Below are positions 11,550 through 60,700 of a stretch of 64,000 bases of DNA, piece by piece. This stretch comes from Podarcis tiliguerta. Its lineage: Eukaryota. The position numbers were made by a program, and so were the translations under genes. The stretch is from NCBI GenBank assembly GCA_965153285.1, contig OZ229113.1; one strand, written 5' to 3'. The notes beneath the pieces are model-generated. The model ran no database searches. It worked only from the letters and a program-made list of their open reading frames with translations, and was not told the origin of the DNA. Positions within the stretch are counted from its first letter, which is position 1, and each line of letters starts with the position of its first letter.

Positions 11550-11791
11550 CAGTGGTACCTCGGGTTAAGAACTTAATTCGTTCCGGAGGTCCGTTCTTAA
11601 CCTGAAACTGTTCTTAACCTGAGGTACCACTTTAGCTAATGGGGCCTCCCACTGCTGCCGCACCACCACTATGTGATTTCTGTTCTCATCCTGAGGTAAA
11701 GTTCTTAACCTGAGGTACTATTTCTGGGTTAGCGGAGTCTGTAGCCTGAAGCGTCTGTAACCTGAAGCGTCTGTAACCCGGGGTACCACTG
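11550..11791. mobile_element. Tc1/mariner (Tigger-like) MITE
   Basis: TA|CAGTGGTACCTCGGGTTA...TAACCCGGGGTACCACTG|TA. Confidence 0.92.
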
Positions 11792-27773: not shown

Positions 27774-28266
27774 GTAAGCTTAGAGTAATTTATTTACACT
27801 AGCTTATGAATCACAGTAGCACTAGGGAAGCTTATTACATCTAGGAACCGACTCTTCCTAAGCTCTATTTATTTAAAGTCTTACATAGCAGCCGTGCCAT
27901 CTTTAGGCGTTTGCTATCAGTCTTGTACCTGCACTTTGCACATTTCAGCACCTTAAGTGTAATTCTTGCAGCCGTCAAGGTTTCCTGCAGCATCTTAGCA
28001 TTACCAAGTTTTAGAAGGAGCTTGTAATCTTTGTTTGCATCCGTTATTTAAGGGGTCTCTCTTAACTAAATTCATTTTCAGAATATTTAGAACTATCATT
28101 AACATTTTATCTGAAAAATGGAAGTACAAGATTATCTTGGAGGTATAAAAACACCGACCTACCAGGCAAAGGACAACTCCCCACCTCACCTCCAAAGCCT
28201 ATGAATAGTTCCCAGCAAAGATAATATGTGAACATGTTTAAAGCCTATAAACCAGAAAGACTAGAT

Positions 28267-31237: not shown

Positions 31238-31485
31238 GAATGTCATTGTCAGCAGGATCTTCTCCCCTTCATTCCCCTAAAATTACTCCTCACACGTCTC
31301 CTGCTCCTAGACGAAGAAGTCATACACCAAACCCAGCAAATTACATGGTGCCTACTAGTGCCTCTACGCCAGTTACTAATGCTGTCTCCCAGCCGCCAGC
31401 TGCTGGCCAGGTGATTCAGAAGGAAACTGTGGGTGGCACAACCTATTTCTATACTGACACAACTCCAGCGCCTGTAACTGGAATG
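31238..31485 (+). CDS. PAN3: PAN3 exon 7 (GMSLSAGSSPLHSPKITPHTSPAPRRRSHTPNP...KETVGGTTYFYTDTTPAPVTGM)
   Basis: tcataag|GAATG...GGAATG|gtgaga; 248 nt; overlaps ORF 31240..31509. Confidence 0.97.
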
Positions 31486-33423
31486 GTGAGAATTCCGTTT
31501 TATTTATGAAGGTATTTGTTATAATCCATAAATTAATGCTGGTATTCCATATAGTAATTACCACATTTCCAAGCTTGATTTGCATCTTGGCTGTTACTGT
31601 TGACTGCCACTGTGGCTTCCTTTTCTGTCTTGCAAAGCTTTCCTATTTGCACACAGTAGGAGAAATAATTTATATACTGCCCTTTATCTCAGAATATTAT
31701 ATTATTATCAAGTAAATAATAAAACCACAGGGCAGTTTACAGTATAAACACACAGAAATACATAACATACCAACAAACTAAACAACCTGCACCCAATAGT
31801 TCATGAGGCCATAGACCATTTAATTAGCCAAAGGCCTGTCAGCAAAGGAATATTATAGCCTGGCACCTAAATATTTGTAATGAAGGTATCGGATTAGCCC
31901 CCCCTGGAGAGAGCATGGCACAGAGAAGGGCTCGGATAATGATCTCAGGGTCCAGGGCAGTTCATATGGGGAGAGGTGGTCAGAATAAACCATGGTTTAT
32001 CATGATGGGAATGAACCTACATGAGCCTTGGACTTAAGTCCTTTCCTTTCCTCCACAAGTATGGCTGCAAGTAAGAGTGGAAGCTTCCTATTTCAATTAA
32101 CTTCCATTTAGCATTCTATCCAAACCCTAAACTGGTCAATAATTATGGTTTGAAATTGGCTTTTTTCATACAAAGCTTAGTTTGAATGATATGAAAAACT
32201 CCAGAAACAGAAATGAAAGCTTCCAAACTCTTTCATCTGTGTAGTAGAAGAGTACGTGAGTCTGAGGCTTGTTGAGTCTCCTTCCTTTCATGATAAAGTT
32301 ATTAAAGAGCAGCATGGGGAGAGCCATAGGTCTGCTGTCGATCACATGCTTTTGCATACGCAATGTTCTAGGTTCTGTTCCTTACATCTTCATTTAAACT
32401 CTTTCTGGTAGCCAGGGAAGGATCTCTGGCTGAGACCTTGTTGCCTCCTGGAGTAGGCACTACTAGACCAGAAAGACCAATGATCAGATTCTGTAGAAGA
32501 ATTACACAGTTTCAGAAGAATTACACAGGCGGCTGATGTAAAGTAAAGTAAGCCCTTTATTCATGGGATGAATAGCATAGAAATCTAGGAGCCTAGACTA
32601 GGTGGCATCAGAGATTCCTTCTATGTGAGATTGTATGCGCAGCTTTGTTGGCTTTTTATTTTAAGGCCATTGCCCCCTAAGAAAACCAGACATGCTCTCT
32701 GACATGGCAGAATTTGTTGTATCTTGAGCCCTTAGGCCAGGTAACAGCAGTGTTTGGCAAACTTTGTGCATGACTTGGGTAGTTTGCCACCATGATGCTT
32801 TCATTAGAATGTTAGATACTTTCTTAAGTATAAGATAAATACTAGCCTAGATTCTCAGAATTAATGAACAATAGCAGCATCAGCTTAAAAAAATTAATTT
32901 CAAAAAATACAACACAAAAAGTTGAGTAAGTATCAGTTTAAACTTCAATGAAGGATTAAAGCCTGGGCTTGGTACCAATCAGTTTCAGCACCATACTCCT
33001 CCATGAATGGGGTGGTGCTACCACTGAAGACTCCCAAGCTGCCACCTGCCTTATCTCCCTCAGCCAGGGGCACTCTGAGAAAGGCTTTTGAGGATGGTTA
33101 TAGGACATGTGCAGGCTTGGGGTGTGCATTTTATGTAGCCCTTATTACCTAACCAGATTCTTATTCCTTATGCTGACCCTGTACTAATATTTTGCACACT
33201 TTCCATACAAACTTATTTTTCTCCCAGAATTTCAAGTTTGGATTTTGAAAGTAATTAATTCAAATGCTGATGACTTTGCAGCCGCAACCATAAGTATGCA
33301 CCCATAAGTGTGCTCATCCTTTTTTTGATATGGCTTCTGTGGAACCACTTCGGAGGGCTTTTAAAAGATCTCATAACTTTTCAAATCCTAAAAACTGTCT
33401 GTTCCAAATTTTATCTTCAATAG

Positions 33424-44383: not shown

Positions 44384-44768
44384 CGGAGTTCAAATTCCCA
44401 TTCTGCCATGAGGCAGTCACAACCTAATCTTCTTTACAGTATTATTGTGAGGATAAAACATTGGAACCAGGTGTGCTGCCTGAAGTTCTTGGAAGAAGAG
44501 CAGGATAAAAGGAAAAATGGAAAACAACTTTGCAGTACATCATCAGCCAGTCACATAAATATAGCCTCGAATGTCACCTCCTAGTGGTGCTACTGTCTTT
44601 CACATAGCTGCAGTGGTGTTAAATGTTCAGTATATGAAGTAGAGCTTTGTGCCATAGTTTTGCTTTTATAGATTAATAAAATTAGCGTTCACAGATGGAA
44701 CCTCTCTTAAAAGAAACTTATTTCTTTAGCCCTGTTTCTAAAGTAACTTTTAAAAACTGCCTTGTTAG

Positions 44769-44898
44769 GTATTTGCTGACTGACCAAAACAGGCTTCGAA
44801 GTGTAAATGATATCATGCCTATGATTGGTGCAAGATTCTATACTCAGTTGGATGCTGCCCAAATGAGAAATGATGTAATAGAAGAAGACCTTGCAAAG
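44769..44898 (+). CDS. PAN3: PAN3 exon 16, coiled-coil region (YLLTDQNRLRSVNDIMPMIGARFYTQLDAAQMRNDVIEEDLAK)
   Basis: ttgttag|GTATT...GCAAAG|gtaaat; 130 nt. Confidence 0.97.
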
Positions 44899-46145
44899 GT
44901 AAATGTGAAGATAATGCACATTCATCTCTATTTTCTTAGTGAAGCTGATATTGCCAACAGGTTCCCAAAGTCTGTAAATGTAGTACGATTGAGACCTGCC
45001 CATCTTGCCATAGGGTGATGTACCCATCCCCCCCCCCCCATTGCTGTTTAAATGATAAGACATGTTGGAAGATACTGTGTTACAGATCAGTGGTTTTCCA
45101 GCCTCAGAGTCTCCACAAATTTCACTTTGATCCATACATATTCACATACCTCATTGGCTAATAATCCTATTTAGTGGAATGGTAAAGCAATTAACTTCTG
45201 CCCATTTTAGAAAGGCAATGGTGAGATGCAAGGTATCTCAGCTAAGATGCTAACTGGCTGGCAGTGTTTGAAACTCCCATTTTTCTAGACGCATTTTGAG
45301 ATAAACAATTGCATTAGCACGAGCAGTTTCTGAGCTGTGGATGCAGTACTGCGCCTAAGCTTTAGGTTTAAACTGCAGAGTGGAAGGAAAGGAGGACCTT
45401 TTCCTGCCTTCCCACTTCCAGCTCCTCGCTGAAGATTAGAGAAGAGACCCTCTTAAGAATATTAGGGGGGTGGGCAGGGGAAGGACTAGACCATGTGAAA
45501 AATGAACATAATATTTTAGCTGCAGTTCATTCATTTTCAGCTTCGTATTGTTGTTATGAAAAAGCGCGCCTAGACATTCCGTTGTTGTGCCCATACAACA
45601 TGGGTTTAAGGTGGCATTTAGCTCCTAGCTTTCATATCTCCGTTTCTAACACTGCCTGCCGCAGGGCACCTTGCCCTGCAGTGGTCTTCAAATAACAGCA
45701 CTGATTGGAGCTCAAAATGGATCTTGGAGGCATGATGGAAATCGCTGCCCAGTGTTGTGATACAGCCTTCTGAAAAATGAAGGCAAACCTACTACTTAGA
45801 TCATAAAGATGTGGAAGTATATGAAAGGATACTAGTCCTCCTCTGTTCTGTGATTATCAAGCAAGGTGTGATTGCCTGAAGAGTCTTTTTTAAGATTAAA
45901 AGTAGATAAGGAGGTCTCTCTCCATTTTGTATGGAGTGCAAAAACTTAAGTTAAACTAAGTTCTCATTAAAATCAACATGACAGACATTATTTAAGTCCC
46001 ATTGCTTTCAAGTGAAATGTAAGTTTTATTCCCTCCTCCCCTCCCTCCGGATCTAACTGTATGGTTATTTGATTATAATTTATACTTTTAACAGAAGAGC
46101 AAAATATAGTGATTGTCAAGCTTTTATTTTTCTCTTGTCATTTAG

Positions 46146-52942: not shown

Positions 52943-53710
52943 TCATAAAAGTGCCAGTATGGCTTTTTCTTTGCATAAATTAATCTGGACCACCTGTTGC
53001 TTGAAATGGATTTTGCTTAGAAAGTTCATTTTGCAAGTAGGCTAAAATGAAAGTTGCAGCAAGTTTTGCTTTGTACTCTTATCTCTGGCAGTCAGAGGGC
53101 AGAAAAAAACTTTAGGATCCTGCCAGGTATTTTTTTAAACCTGCAAAAAGTCTGCAAGAGCAGTTTTCATCTTTACACCTTCTAAAAGTGCATGCGTGGC
53201 CCTGCTGTTCATTGTCCCTGGGTTTTGTTTCTCAAGCTGGAGTATGCTTAACAGCTTGTGAGCATGTGGGTTGCAAAAGCATGCTTGCACATCACATTGG
53301 CCCATGTGCCAGAGGATAAGGCTTGACTTCAACTCCTTTCTACAGCTACACACGATGGCAAGCACATCTTTCCTGCTGACAGCTTTGAATTCAAACGATG
53401 CCTTGGGCAAGTACAGAATTCTGTGCATGCAACTGCATATAGACCATGGAGAAAAAACTCACCTTTAGAAGGGCCCAATGATCCACAGAATGAAGAAGCA
53501 TCTCTTTATCACACTACCAGTGACTTAGCTTGAATTCATCCCCTTGAAATAAGGTTGATCTTCTGACAGGCCTGGACAAATACTTTGGCTACTTGAAATG
53601 GCTGCTTCAAGCCAAAACCAACAAATTTGGTGAGACACTTCTGCAACATTATGGAATTATTATGAACTCAAGCAAAGCAATAATCTCTCAAATGGAGCTT
53701 GGAAATAAAT

Positions 53711-53716
53711 TTTATT
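53711..53716 (-). terminator. Likely FLT1 poly(A) signal
   Basis: TTTATT on + (AATAAA on -) ~1.5 kb past the FLT1 stop, at the end of an AU-rich block. Confidence 0.5.
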
Positions 53717-55200
53717 GTGAAACTTTAGGAAGCATATGTAAAAATAGACGGTAAAAGTTAAGGCACAAGTAGGAGATATTTACATCCAGTTAAAGAATGC
53801 TTTTTAAATTCCAGTTTTTTAAAAAAGGTTCGTTAAAAGCATTAGATTTGAATATAAAAAATATTTGTTTTTACAATTACTAATGCCCTACATGAAAATA
53901 AACCCAGGAGTTTCACTCCTCAGCTCTTTATAGATCCATTGGCTTTAATAATAGAGTCATGGCTGAATAGTTTGCTGATGTTCCATCTGATGAAAGAGCA
54001 CAAAGATTACAGACTTACGGCTTTAGAAACGGAGTGTTCTAAAATTCTCCAGCACCCAAACACTCTTCACTCTATTGGCCTTGATCCAGCTCAGGTTAAT
54101 TGTGACAAATTGTCATTGAAACCAATGAATCAAGTTTAGGCATAACCAACTTGGAACAGCAGGACCGACATCAGCTGCTTTTATAGAACAGCCATCGTGG
54201 TAGCTTACTGGTCGACCAAGGCAGTGGTTCACTACCATAACTACCTGCCCCTTGGCAAAAAGAACCTAGCAGCACACTCTTAGCACTAAACTAATTCAAT
54301 AGTTGCAATAGCAGCAGCACAAGATTCAACAGGTATTTCAGACAGTGCAAAGCTGCAGCTGGATGCAGGTTTTATTGCTGATTAGCTACAGCAGGTTGGC
54401 CCAATGCTTTGTGCCTCTGCTGTCACTTGCAGCTGGGAGTATAAAAGCAGACTAGTATAATAGATACATAGAGAACTGTGTGTTCTCTCATGGAAAATAC
54501 TAAGATGCTGCGCCAGGGAGTCCCCAGTATTGCCTCAAGAAAACCTGAATCCTACCTGTGTTTGTTGTGCAGATTTACTTTGTGCAGTGTATATGTTGCT
54601 TCAGCAAGCTACAAGGTAAAGAGCTATGCAGGGAGCTGAGGCCCCAACACCCTCTGTATGGTTTTGAAATGTTTAATAAGGTATTGCAGAGCTACCCTTG
54701 CCCCTGATGCATTCACTGTATCCCCGTTACGTCTGCTTGAACTGTTTCTACTGAACACACTCCTTCAAAAGCTGAAACAATTCCACAGCAGCATGAGAGC
54801 AAAATGGGTATGTATCTACAAAACTCTGTGGGTAAAATAAAAGTGCAATCTCCCTTAAGCATATAACTAAGTAGACCAGAAGCGCCTGGTCAGTTTCACC
54901 ATCCTCCCATAGCATTGCCTGAGACCAGTGTAAGGATCTGTATTTAGGAAGTGAGAGAAATACAGTGCACAGGGTTCTCTTCCTGCTGTCCCCCTCATAT
55001 TTGAATAGTTACTGGGTTCTTGTGGTTCTTGCTGTTGGGTGGAAGCTAGTGCTACAGCACAGAAATAGCCTGTACTCTACAGGGGTGCTGTTGGGTCAGT
55101 GAGTAGCAGGAAGGAGCGATCAGTATTTTAAATGGTGATAGTGGAGAGAGGCAGCTCAGTGGAGGACCAGCTGCTTTGAGTAGTTCAAAGTCCTTACTTG

Positions 55201-55402
55201 CTACACTGGAGGAGTGGAATAGCGAACCACCGAGTTATAGCTGGGAGGAGAGGAGCCCTGCATCTGCTTCCCTTCCCAGCCGGTGCTGCTGCGGGTAAAT
55301 GGCAGAGTCACATCGCTGATGTGGCCACAGCTGGAACTGTAAACCTTTGGCTTTGCGGTGTCACAAAGGACAGACTCCTTGCTTCGGCTGCCAGAGAGGA
55401 GG
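55201..55402 (-). CDS. FLT1: FLT1 last exon 30 CDS (LLSGSRSKESVLCDTAKPKVYSSSCGHISD...SSPPSYNSVVRYSTPPV*)
   Basis: gcttgtag|CCTCC...GTGTAG; SKES, SCGH and YNSVVxYSTPP motifs (human Y1327/Y1333 equivalents) are typical of VEGFR1. Confidence 0.93.
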
Positions 55403-56154
55403 CTACAAGCAAAAGCAGACGTATGTTAGATTAAAATTATGTATCATTAATATGGTTCCACTATCCTCACCAATGCTATAGAGCATGAACCTTTGTTTGG
55501 GAACTGCATTTAGGATTTCTCATGCCCCAAGCAAGACACAGTCTTTTCTTTTTGTCCTTTTAAGCAAGTCTGACCAACTTCCTTACTGTCCATTCACTGC
55601 TTAGAATAATTCCTGTTAATACAGCCTTTTCATGGGGAAGCCCTTATTCCCTAGACAGGAGCTAGGCAGAGGAAGGCGGCTAACACAACATGGCAGAGGG
55701 CAGGAGCAAAAATGACGCTCTTGCATCCCTCCATTGTCATGTTGCCATTTTAGTATCCTGATTATACCACGCTGAGTCATGAAAGGGAAGGGGCACTAAG
55801 AACAAAAGCCATACCCTGCCCCCAGCTCTATAATGTGGTCGTTTTTGTATATTGCTAACTCAAACACAAGGCAGGGACCAAATTGACCAGTGCTGTGGGA
55901 GGAGGTGTAAATTTCCCCCTTTTGCAATCCTCCACCTGCCCATAAAAGCCACCCCATAGAACAAGATATACCCATATGATACCTGAGACCCATAGGGCAA
56001 ACAGCAGGTGAATGGAGAGTGGTCTTTCTCAGGAAAATGGGTCACAGGAATAGGGTTAACACCCCCTTTAAGTGACAGATTCAATTAGATTCCTAGCAAA
56101 TGTCTCCACTTTGTGTCTCCACTTGCATCCTGAATAGTCATGGAAATCACATAC

Positions 56155-56246
56155 CCAAAGAAAGTTTGCTTTTGTTTGCTGCCTGTCCATGTAAAACGCT
56201 TCCGTTCTTCTGAAGACAGCACCATCCCACTGCTGGCCTGGTAATC
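56155..56246 (-). CDS. FLT1: FLT1 exon 29 (DYQASSGMVLSSEERKRFTWTGSKQKQTFFG)
   Basis: ttttcag|GATTAC...TTTGG|gtatgt; 92 nt; DYQ...KRFTW motif. Confidence 0.93.
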
Positions 56247-57013
56247 CTGAAAAAGAACACACCTTCGGTAATGCAACTTTGTTCCTTGTGTGTTCAAGTT
56301 TACTCCAGTTACACATTGACTCTGAATAACCCATCATCTACATGGCCCTAAATTGACTTTTTGGTAAAAGTGCAACCATGTAGGGTGTTCAACAACTGTG
56401 CAGAATGTGTACCTGTGTACGCAAAGAGTTGAGTTTGTACACCAATATTCACATGTAACATTCAATGGCCATAAAGTCTGTGTACACAACAGCTTAGCTG
56501 TACAAATCAACAAGGGTACACCCACAAATACTTGTATATTTTTAGAGACAGCTTGTACTTGTATTTGGGGTAATATGTGAATAAGCCTTATGTTAGCTGC
56601 AAGAAAAGTGGTGTATGAGCAGTGTCCCTGAAGCTTGTAACTGAGTCTACGCTCAGAGAACTCCAAGAATATCTCTGATATGTAAAGATATGCTAAACCA
56701 TAACACTAAAAAGTGCAGTCCTACTCAGTCTCAGTGGACGAAGAGTGTCAACTAAGAAGTAGTTATCAGTTTGATAATTTATCACTTTTTTGAGAACAGA
56801 AATACTTTTTTTTACCACTGCTCATACACTCATAGTTTACCTAGCCAACCACCTCACTCCATCAGCGCTCTTCCTTCCATAAATTAGACTTGGAGCCCCT
56901 TCAAATCAGTGGTGTTTTTTGCAGATGTATTCTGCAATGTGTTGGGCTCGTAGCTTCTTGCTGAAATGCTGTAACTTTTCATCCCACAAACGTTTATTTT
57001 TTAAAAATAAATA

Positions 57014-57040
57014 AAGCGTATGTAACCCGAGGTACCACTG
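57014..57040. mobile_element. Solitary terminal 27 bp of a Tc1/mariner MITE
   Basis: AAGCGTATGTAACCCGAGGTACCACTG|TA matches the right end of 11550-11791; the rest is absent. Confidence 0.85.
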
Positions 57041-57078
57041 TATGTATATTGAGCTGCTCTGTTTTATATTCTTTCTAC

Positions 57079-57088
57079 CTGTGAACAT
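57079..57088 (-). CDS. FLT1: Hypothetical 10-nt FLT1 microexon replacing exon 28 (G-C-S-Q)
   Basis: ttctcacccttgttcag|ATGTTCACAG|gtagaa; phase 2 to 0 exactly bridges exons 27 and 29; no transcript evidence. Confidence 0.25.
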
Positions 57089-57316
57089 CTGAACAAGGGT
57101 GAGAAACACACTCTAACTTTATGGGCGGGATTTAACTAAGTTGTTGCATGAGCAGAATGAGATCCAGTTGTGCAACAGGACTTTGCCCCATCTTTCCCCT
57201 CACATCCCCTAAATCTGTTCTGGATGGCTGGGGAAACTTTAGAGGGCATGCACGAAATCCATGCTGCTAGTCATTCCTTTGCTATATGGGTAAAATATCT
57301 TGGTATTCCATCATAC

Positions 57317-57459
57317 CCAGTGTTTTCGATGCTTGTGTAGTTCAAGGCTGGTACTGAATGATTTCCTCTCTCATGAGGATGAGGGGAAGTTGGAGAGGAA
57401 TGGTCAAATTCAGGATCCACTGATAATATAGTATTCAGAGGGATATAGTCTTTGCCATC
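57317..57459 (-). CDS. FLT1: FLT1 exon 27 (DGKDYIPLNTILSVDPEFDHSSPTSPHPHERGNHSVPALNYTSIENTG)
   Basis: ttatgtag|GATGGC...ACTGG|gtatga; 143 nt; DGKDYIP motif (Y1169 equivalent). Confidence 0.93.
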
Positions 57460-57624
57460 CTACATAAACAGAAGTATAAAAATTATCAAACAGATAGGAA
57501 TAGTGTAAAAACAATGCCAAGCATTGGAGTCCACAAGCTCCCTAGGGAGTCCATTCCACTGTCAAACAACCATGACCTCCCTGAAACACCATAAACATGA
57601 TGTATACTGCATTTTGCTGCTTGC

Positions 57625-57730
57625 CTGCTTTACGTTTGCTTGAAGTAGATCTCCCAATCTCTCCACCAGCTCTGAGAATCTTGGCCTTTCCTTTGGATCC
57701 CCTTGCCAGCAATCCAGCATGATCTGATAT
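57625..57730 (-). CDS. FLT1: FLT1 exon 26 ([35 protein letters not shown])
   Basis: ttttggcag|ATATCAG...AAGCAG|gcaagc (GC donor); 106 nt; kinase subdomain XI. Confidence 0.95.
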
Positions 57731-60700
57731 CTGCCAAAAGCAAAAGACAGTGTATCATGAGCACTACGTCTATGACCCACACTTGAACAGCAGACTTCAG
57801 ATCTGGGAGCCACCCTTAACACAAACTTGCAACATGGGATCCATTTTTAAATCATTTTCTATACACGTCCACCTCCCCTCCTCTCTTTTCTCTCCTACTT
57901 TCTAACTTAAACTCTCTCTTTTATGTGCGCCAAACAAAATACAGAAATGGTGAAAGTGCTACTGATACTCCCAGAGTTCAGAGCAGCATTTGTGTGCCTT
58001 GAAGAACCATCAGTGCCGTGCAGTAGAGAACACACCAAACCTCTTGTAGTATTTCAGGCATTTCTACAGAGTTAACTGTTGCAGTTTTAATTAGTTTTCA
58101 TAGGATTTAGGTTCTGAGGAAAGTGAGGAAGAAGTCAGTAGAGTTATGATGAAACTCCTGCTTTTTCATTCTTCCTCTTTCCACATGTGAACGATGAACA
58201 AATACTTAAACTCCTCACAAGGCTCCATAGCTTGGTTGCTCGCTTGCCAGACTAATCTCAGGGCTAGAAAAATCTCTGTTGCATTGAAATCTTAAAGCTT
58301 CTCTACTGCAGTGTAAGCCCATTATCTCTTGCCCTCCAAGCACCGGTTACGCCATTGCTCCCATCGGACTTTCATGTGTTTGAAAGGTTATCAAGCTGCT
58401 GCATCGACCTTCTCTGGCATAAGCCAAACATCAGGAGCCCTTTGGGAGCCTGCATCACAGATCTCTGCCCCCAATCTCTGATAACCTCTGCCGCTCTTCA
58501 CTGATTCCTCTCTCAGTTGTTATCCACACACCCACCCCAAAAAGCACACAGGCCTCACAATAGCCAAACCAGAAAGTTTCATTCTGTAGTCTTGCCATTA
58601 GTAAATGTGGTGGCTGAACAGAGTGATGCTGGAGCATCAAAGGGGGAATGGGATGTCGCACATCTCATGTGGTATCTCTTGAGAATCCTTGTTTTTATTG
58701 ACCAACCTCCCCATCCCACTTAAGATAGGATTAATAGTGTGTGGACAATGTCTGGTAGAGTCTCAGATGCAGGGCTTAGGGATTTGTATGTGTAACAAAG
58801 GAGGGTTCAGTTGGCTTCAGACAGGAATTTTAACCCTCACGCAACTTTTGGTTTCAGAGTTGAGGGCTATTGTTGTTGCAGTTATGACATTTATGAAGTT
58901 ACATCTGACCCGGGGTGTGTGTACAAAAATGCAGAAAAAGAAATAAAAGGGAGGGCCCATACTTTAGGAGGTAGTAGTCATGCATGTGCTACGCATTTGA
59001 GATGCTGGGGAACTTCTTCAAGCTCAGACTAGAAACCTACCTTGGGAGGCCTGTAAAAATCCCTTGCAAAAGAAGAGGTGAATTTGACAAGCCCTAAATG
59101 TCTTCTCCTACATAGATGAAAACCCCAGCAGGAGAAGACATCCCAGCTCCACCCAACTTCACACAGGTATCTTTCTGTCATTTGCCTCACCTGTCCCTGC
59201 TGCCTTCCCCATACCCAAAGGTCGCTCCCATTTTTCCTACCACACACACATATTCCCCTGTCCTACCAGTAGGGAGCAGCAGCAGTAGGAAAAAATGGTA
59301 GGTCTTTCCCCCCATCCTCTAACAGCATGGCAGGCAAGGAGGATTATTAGAGTTGTGGTTCTTCCAAGGGCTCCTGCAAATGCACCTGGATTTAAATTAA
59401 TCTGGAGCCTGTATTCACTGGGATTCCTAATACCACTGATCCTAACAGGCTTTTTTGGTGTCATCATATTGCATTGCCATCCATTTGGATTTTTCTGGGA
59501 ATATCCTGCATACAGGAGTCTGGTTTCATCAGCGGTTGGGAACCTCTAGTCCATGGGCTTCAAGATCAGCCCAGCAAGTCATTTTTGGGGCACCACACCC
59601 ATCTTTCTTAGCCTGACATCATATATGACATCAAGCATGGGAAAGTTCAAGAGGCAGCTGCTGCAGGGCAAGGCAAGATGTAGCACTTCTCGAATTTGTC
59701 ACTTTTTTCTTTTTCTCTGAACAAAGAAATGAAAAAAAAGCACAGAATTTTGCCTGCAAAAGAAGAAGGGGAAGTGCATTCTTAGTGCACTCCCAATTCT
59801 TCCTTTAAAGCCACTGCTTGAATTCAAGCTGATGATGCAAAGGAACAAACCATCCTTTGCAGCCATGGCTTGAATTCAATCTAGTTGCAAAGGAAGAATT
59901 GGGGATGCAACTGCGGATTGAAGCCACAATCCCCTGATGTCATGTGATATCAGGTGAATGGAGGATGTGCGGCCTCACCTGTCAAAGTAGTCTGTGTGCG
60001 GCTGGCCATTTCCAGACCTGGCCCTCTGGCTGAAGACAATTTCCCAACCCCGACTTACAGGATCACCACCCCAAAATCATTTTGATGTCCCTTTCTGATA
60101 TTATGTTCTCCGTGAAGGTGTCTCCATTGGAATTACACAAAATCATTCTGATTGTGAGATGTGCATAGGAACTAGTATACATCCTAAATTGTGTGTGTGT
60201 GGGCCTCCATCCTGTCTGGAGCTTAGGGGAGCTGAAGTCGAAAACATACGGAAGACCACAGCTTAGGCACCCCTGCCTTAAATCCCAAAACCCAGAGAGC
60301 AGATCTTAAGGATAAGTTCCTTTAAGGAAAAAGCTAGCTGAAGGCCTAACTAAAGCGAAAGCCAAATTATGTTTTTAAGGAAAGCGGAGGAAAATGATTC
60401 AGGAAGGGGTGACTTAAGAGTAGAGAATGCTGTGCTTAACCTTTTCACCACCTATAATTTCTCTGTTCCAGTTTCTCCCCCTTAAAACTAACTTAACTAT
60501 CTGCCTACAGCAGGGGTGGCTAAGCAGTGGCTCTCTAGATATTGTTGGACTACAACTCCCATCATCCCTGACCATTGGTCTTGCTGGCTGGGGATGATGG
60601 AGGTGGAATTCAACATCTGGATGGCCACAGATTAGCCACCCCAAATGAGTGTGAGGGTATGAAGACATTTGAAACCCTATGGCACGAAAAACAACAGGGA

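Follow-up and report, generated by a model that had tools for sequence, protein, structure and literature searches.

The FLT1 tail in a Podarcis tiliguerta assembly lacks a recognisable exon 28, whereas transcripts of two close relatives include a 76-nt exon at the same position

Results

FLT1 and PAN3 are convergent in the window

The window, as we call the whole 64-kb stretch of DNA that was analysed, contains the 3' end of a receptor tyrosine kinase gene on its minus strand. This gene is FLT1, which encodes VEGFR1, and its orthologue class is FLT1, not KDR or FLT4. The peptide encoded by its last exon (...SRSKESVLCDTAKP...SPPSYNSVVRYSTPPV, followed by the stop) matched only FLT1 tails, all of them short fragments, in a search of 1.8 billion representative proteins, the best matches being those of the skink Lerista (66%) and of Phrynosoma (65%), followed by mammalian FLT1 fragments. 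Matches to the Pfam profile PK_Tyr_Ser-Thr, with E values of 1.1e-16 in exon 24 and 1.2e-5 in exon 26, show that the tail immediately follows the kinase domain, and tblastn with marsupial FLT1 placed exons 24, 25, 26, 29 and 30 in the window, with 97% identity in exon 24. The last-exon peptide, the kinase matches and the marsupial alignment thus concur in identifying the gene as FLT1.

PAN3 occupies the plus strand, tail to tail with FLT1, which is the arrangement found in amniotes. A PAN3 open reading frame at 44695-45015 (to 45018; plus strand) matches residues 672-720 of a solved PAN3 chain with an E value of 6e-22. A second plus-strand segment, at 31240-31509, reads SPLHSPKITPHTSPAPRRRSHTPNP... 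and presumably corresponds to the N-terminal region of PAN3, which it resembles.

Three profile searches seeded with exons of the window covered proteins of 65-208, 113-360 and 199-632 aa; they yielded FLT1 fragments from turtle, bird, snake, skink, iguanians and mammals and, within those ranges, no lacertid FLT1 protein. The fragments encoded by the relatives' contigs described below measure about 455 to 690 aa, as estimated from contig coordinates, so that the longer ones exceed the ranges searched. Among squamates, the tail of FLT1 has diverged strongly.

Exon-intron structure of the gene's end

Exon numbers follow the human convention, as in the preliminary description of this DNA. Eighteen RNA-like runs from four organisms hold 0.09-0.18 of the stretch's sampled 31-mers. 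Three RNA-like runs, two from one organism and one from another, belonging to three studies, and the best DNA run of the window's species were aligned to positions 53500-57800 at a threshold of at least 90% identity. In each of the three RNA-like runs, a single contig connects exons 26, 27, 29 and 30 with the 3' UTR, using canonical splice sites throughout, and stops close to the poly(A) signal. Since introns have been removed at canonical sites and the ends fall where a poly(A) signal would put them, we take these contigs to be transcripts. They are about 96-98% identical to the window, with differences amounting to about 2-4% in the UTR and to 1-3 bases per exon, which indicates close relatives, and not the window's own species, as their source.

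Exon 26 (57625-57730, minus strand), the end of the kinase domain, is delimited by its translation, by tblastn, by the Pfam match given above and by the relatives' spliced contigs. Intron 26 (57460-57624, minus strand) appears as a 165-nt skip in all three relatives' contigs. Its joint has 3 letters of slack, within which a GC-AG intron (CAG/gcaagc...tgtag/G) is the sole canonical placement. Part of this intron, positions 57527-57570, is a high-copy repeat; summed over its bin, the DNA depth is near 2,000, and its loose ends share one direction in 4 of 4 runs.

Exon 27 (57317-57459, minus strand) is 143 nt long and ends in phase 2, reading DGKDYIPLNTILSVDPEFDHSSPTSPHPHERGNHSVPALNYTSIENT + GG, that is, ...IENT followed by two bases of a Gly codon. 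On the other side of a 1,070-nt interval (56247-57316, minus strand), the expected site of exon 28, lies exon 29 (56155-56246, minus strand; 92 nt), which begins in phase 0 with DYQASSG and reads DYQASSGMVLSSEERKRFTWTGSKQKQTFF + GG. The coding part of exon 30 (55201-55402, minus strand) starts at 55402 and ends with a stop codon at 55201-55203. The phases at the two borders of the interval, as given in the preliminary description, were read again in the window, and the borders are identical in the relatives' spliced contigs; exons 29 and 30 likewise remain open in the canonical frame and are conserved in it, as had been stated. Within the last exon (55204-55401, minus strand), the RRFTY-type motif of mammals, turtle and bird reads LPFTR, so that its tyrosine is absent; the tyrosines of the PP.YNSVV.Y motif are kept.

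The 3' UTR extends over about 1.5 kb (53682-55200, minus strand). An AATAAA signal lies at 53710-53715, and the relatives' contigs end between 53682 and 53701; the signal thus precedes the end point by approximately 10-30 nt in 3 of the 3 FLT1 contigs.

Close relatives have a 76-nt exon 28

In every one of the relatives' contigs, 75 letters stand between the bases corresponding to 57316 and 56246 and align to neither side. The exon-27 piece of these contigs extends beyond the end of the exon by a single base (57316), and the insert therefore measures 76 nt. This length is 1 mod 3, exactly as the change of phase from 2 to 0 requires. None of the insert letters were placed on 53500-57800 at 90% identity or above. 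Pieces as short as 42-57 nt were placed for other contigs, so that a surviving part of exon 28 should have shown up in the same alignments. Hence, two close relatives own and use a 76-nt exon 28, known by its length only, of which the window's assembly has no recognisable copy. The length of about 85 nt that the preliminary description expected for the missing exon is consequently the wrong one for this group. Given that turtle, bird, mammals and snakes (six outgroups) as well as the relatives possess exon 28, its absence from the window is a derived condition and not a general lacertid trait.

The exon is missing from the assembled interval

The preliminary description had reported that the interval contains no intact peptide of the YVNAF/YINTF...KTFEEL type, and none is present in any of the 3 frames of 56247-57316. 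More sensitive comparisons were made with exon-28 peptides from turtle (P0156, YINTFKMKSPQRVNTFEELSPQDTFVFD), from a bird-like transcript (P0157), from a marsupial (P0082), from a whale (P0012) and from two snakes (P0006 and P0011), the snake queries beginning inside exon 28 (MKPFHRVFEESSSNNKFQPD). Single-frame local alignment of these peptides to the interval gave nothing that stood robustly above shuffled sequences; the best case, obtained with one of seven queries at 56545-56589, was equalled by 3 of 200 shuffles. Frameshift-tolerant alignment of protein to DNA over the same interval yielded scores equal to the shuffle means. The tblastn search that had been proposed as a check was run with the outgroup peptides on the whole window, and it returned matches at chance level only (best E 0.22). 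These results, together with the relatives' alignments, confirm that the canonical exon 28, the exon of Tyr1213, is missing from the assembled interval.

Two places that might have been taken for the exon were discarded. The best tblastn match, YVNMFKAYKPERL at 28225-28263 (plus strand), could have represented a displaced copy; its E value of 0.22 among six queries, its strand, which is the wrong one, and its position inside PAN3 mark it as a chance match. A putative decayed exon 28 at 57040-57112, reading VERI and KT-EQL across a frameshift, was not picked by the frameshift-tolerant alignment, where nothing rose above shuffles.

Candidate exons inside the interval

All AG...GT pairs in the interval with a length of 1 mod 3 and an open frame were listed, and their splice sites were scored with a heuristic PWM, which serves as a ranking aid only. 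No in-frame pair of 76 nt is among them.

One pair at 56890-56974 (minus strand) is exactly 85 nt long (79 nt if counted from 56968), open and in frame, and reads YSISARSYEPNTLQNTSAKNTTDLKGLQ, with a Tyr codon first. It is the obvious candidate for a diverged exon 28 that had been overlooked, the eventuality under which the preliminary description would have had to be withdrawn. The best alignment of the turtle peptide (INTFKMKS... against INVCGMKS...) falls on this very segment, and the divergence of squamate FLT1 tails also speaks in its favour. However, the score of that alignment is exactly the shuffle mean, and the splice signals are poor, with scores of -7 to -10 for the acceptor and of -3 for the donor, compared with 4 to 11 at real sites. 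Moreover, the length is not that of the relatives' exon, for which the interval offers no in-frame candidate, and the relatives' exon was not placed there even though the genomes are about 97% identical; an identity below 90% would need at least 8 differences in 79 nt. The segment, despite its canonical length and its initial tyrosine, is therefore probably not an exon: its splice signals are poor, its similarity to exon 28 is of the order expected by chance and no relative's contig lies on it. An overlooked diverged exon is in our opinion highly unlikely.

A second candidate is of a different kind. A 10-nt segment at 57079-57088 (minus strand), ATGTTCACAG, could act as a cryptic microexon, giving a Gly-Cys-Ser-Gln reading. 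Its length is 1 mod 3 and its frame is open; its acceptor, which scores 10.7, ranks first among the interval's 77 AG sites and resembles those of exons 26 and 27, and its donor (4.6) is similar to the real donors (4.2-5.9). Its use between exons 27 and 29, as a variant of the real deletion considered below, would rescue the frame and would explain why the frame downstream is intact. Yet recognition of an exon as short as 10 nt is usually poor, the scores just given come from the same heuristic PWM, and the relatives' transcripts do not include the segment, their insert being 76 nt and not 86. In addition, an intact downstream frame is to be expected simply from the recency of the event. A deletion rescued in this manner seems to us distinctly improbable.

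A truncated MITE next to an AT-rich inverted repeat

The interval contains one end of a transposable element that is present elsewhere in the window as a full-length copy. The latter (11550-11791, minus strand) is 242 bp long and is bounded by terminal inverted repeats of about 18 nt, CAGTGGTACC(C/T)CGGGTTA, which differ by one mismatch, with TA on both sides. At 57014-57040 (minus strand) there is a one-sided stump of 27 nt, consisting of the first inverted terminal repeat; it is identical to the first 27 nt of the full copy at 25 of 27 positions and is preceded by TA. Among DNA contigs of the window's species, the depths in the bin that holds the stump sum to nearly 5x10^5, as against about 16 for single-copy sequence. 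Inverted repeats, a TA target-site duplication, a short non-coding body and a high copy number characterise this repeat as a MITE of the Tc1/mariner type. The preliminary description, which had reported at this place the last 27 bp of a mariner MITE ending abruptly, was thus correct, both as to the remnant and as to the abrupt end of the match.

The same description had pointed to an AT-rich palindrome beside the stump. An imperfect AT-rich inverted repeat does follow the stump directly (56987-57018); its predicted hairpin (-6 kcal/mol) folds no better than shuffled sequences (z = -1.0), and in this respect it is unremarkable. Just downstream of the stump, 45 nt at 56949-56994 are about 90% identical to other contigs, both from low-depth DNA of the species and from an RNA-like run of a relative. 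They may form the edge of another low-copy repeat, of which the window holds no second copy.

The stump shares with other one-sided truncated Tc1/mariner MITE copies the inverted repeat (CAGTGGTACC.CGGGTTA) and the TA site, and the 242-bp copy supplies the complete form; what sets the copy in the FLT1 intron apart is its reduction to 27 nt of one end. When a MITE is excised normally, the footprint is a few bases long. A deletion extending into flanking DNA is therefore the likelier origin of a 27-nt stump, and the junction at 57013/57014 can be regarded as a putative deletion breakpoint, possibly linked to the loss of the exon.

A deletion in the animal or a dropout in the assembly

The preliminary description offered two explanations for the missing exon: a real, perhaps recent or polymorphic, loss with a compensating splice, or a collapse of the assembly. 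That framework stands and is sharpened by the relatives' 76-nt exon.

In the first, the sequenced haplotype would carry a deletion of fairly recent date that removed exon 28 from the tail region of FLT1. The same deletion would have taken most of the MITE in the same intron, leaving the 27-nt stump at 57014-57040. Several observations are in keeping with such an event. The one-sided truncation of the element is what a deletion running from inside it into flanking DNA would produce, and the open canonical frame of exons 29 and 30, combined with a divergence of about 3% from the relatives, fits a recent date. Against it speaks that conserved receptors, a priori, rarely lose a coding exon. We favour a real deletion on the sequenced haplotype, and with it the absence of the exon from the animal as well as from its assembly, tentatively, with a confidence that falls a little short of even.

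In the second, exon 28 would be present in the animal in its normal 76-nt form, a few hundred bases having been dropped during assembly beside the high-copy MITE and the AT-rich inverted repeat. The break falls exactly at a repeat of extreme depth, next to a stretch able to form a hairpin. None of the listed DNA contigs of the species bridges 57013/57014, and the only one among them that approaches the break, a Logan contig, ends at 57022, inside the stump. Exons 29 and 30 keep the canonical frame, which an artefact and a recent deletion predict equally, and draft gene models in which exon 28 is missing do exist, such as that of deer FLT1 (P0154), where ...SSDN passes to DYQ. On the other hand, a misjoin or collapse between two copies of the repeat should preserve the MITE in full, not reduce it to a one-sided stump of 27 nt, which makes a collapse of the classic kind unlikely. 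Furthermore, the window contains 0 N, and DNA runs of the species hold 0.99, 0.86 and 0.83 of the stretch's sampled 31-mers, although even the share of 0.99 in the best run allows a few words across a junction to be missing. We consider a dropout possible, if on balance unlikely.

Predicted consequences for the receptor

The preliminary description had predicted a frameshift, and a stop in the last exon, if exon 27 is spliced directly to exon 29. When the shifted frame is read exon by exon, with no joined model, exon 29 gives ITRPAVGWCCLQKNGSVLHGQAANKSKLSL and exon 30 gives ...SSLAAEARSLSFVTPQSQRFTVPAVATSAM before the stop, in agreement with that prediction. As the stop lies in the last exon, nonsense-mediated decay of such a transcript is not expected. 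In human VEGFR1, Tyr1169 binds PLC-gamma; Tyr1213 and Tyr1333 are binding sites for Nck, Crk, Grb-2, Sck, p85 and SHP-2, and Tyr1242 and Tyr1327 are of minor importance (PMC2773843). A receptor made from the direct splice would keep the kinase domain and the Tyr1169-type site, which is encoded by exon 27; it would end in about 62 unrelated residues and would lose the equivalents of Tyr1213, Tyr1242, Tyr1327 and Tyr1333.

The alternative would be inclusion of the microexon at 57079-57088, by which the frame would be kept and only the exon-28 segment lost. Cys-Ser-Gln would then stand in place of about 25 residues, and the Tyr1242-, Tyr1327- and Tyr1333-type sites would be retained. The full scenario, in which a recent natural deletion took the exon with the main SH2-docking segment and a newly recruited 10-nt microexon keeps the frame, is a long shot. 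If true, it would provide a natural VEGFR1 devoid of the exon-28 docking segment and a cryptic-microexon rescue caught in the act.

Discussion

The new evidence in this analysis is the 76-nt exon 28 of two close relatives, which sharpens the absence of the exon from the assembly studied here. Should the absence be real, it would amount to a natural loss or rewriting of the cytoplasmic tail of VEGFR1 in a vertebrate. It would then bear on the old question of the extent to which VEGFR1 signals and the extent to which it is a mere ligand trap, and would offer a comparative system in which congeners with exon 28 can be set against this species without it. Should it be an artefact, a local error in a chromosome-level assembly would yield an FLT1 gene model that is frameshifted or truncated. 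In both cases, the FLT1 model of this assembly is not to be trusted downstream of exon 27, pending reads or RNA.

The canonical exon 28 of amniotes, with 28 codons including that of Tyr1213, sits between the same two exons and bridges the same phases, 2 into 0. It is present in turtle, bird, marsupial and whale, and the snakes have a divergent version of it. Unlike in these animals, no such sequence occurs in the window's assembly, and the exon of the relatives, at 76 nt (25 codons and one base), differs from the canonical 85 nt.

A comparable arrangement is found in the draft model of FLT1 from Cervus elaphus hippelaphus (P0154), where the end of exon 27 is likewise followed directly by the beginning of exon 29 (...NSGSSDN/DYQLDSG...). 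The deer model differs in being the annotation of a draft assembly, and it may itself be due to a similar gap in annotation or assembly.

The nearest functional parallel is the Flt1 TK-/- mouse of Hiratsuka et al. (1998, as listed in PMC2773843), whose receptor, which has no tyrosine kinase domain, is reportedly compatible with normal development. The likeness lies in a VEGFR1 deprived of cytoplasmic signalling parts. The difference lies in extent and origin: in the mouse the whole kinase region was removed by engineering, whereas in the window at most the last 120 or so residues would be changed, and naturally. By analogy with this precedent, damage to the VEGFR1 tail would plausibly be tolerated.
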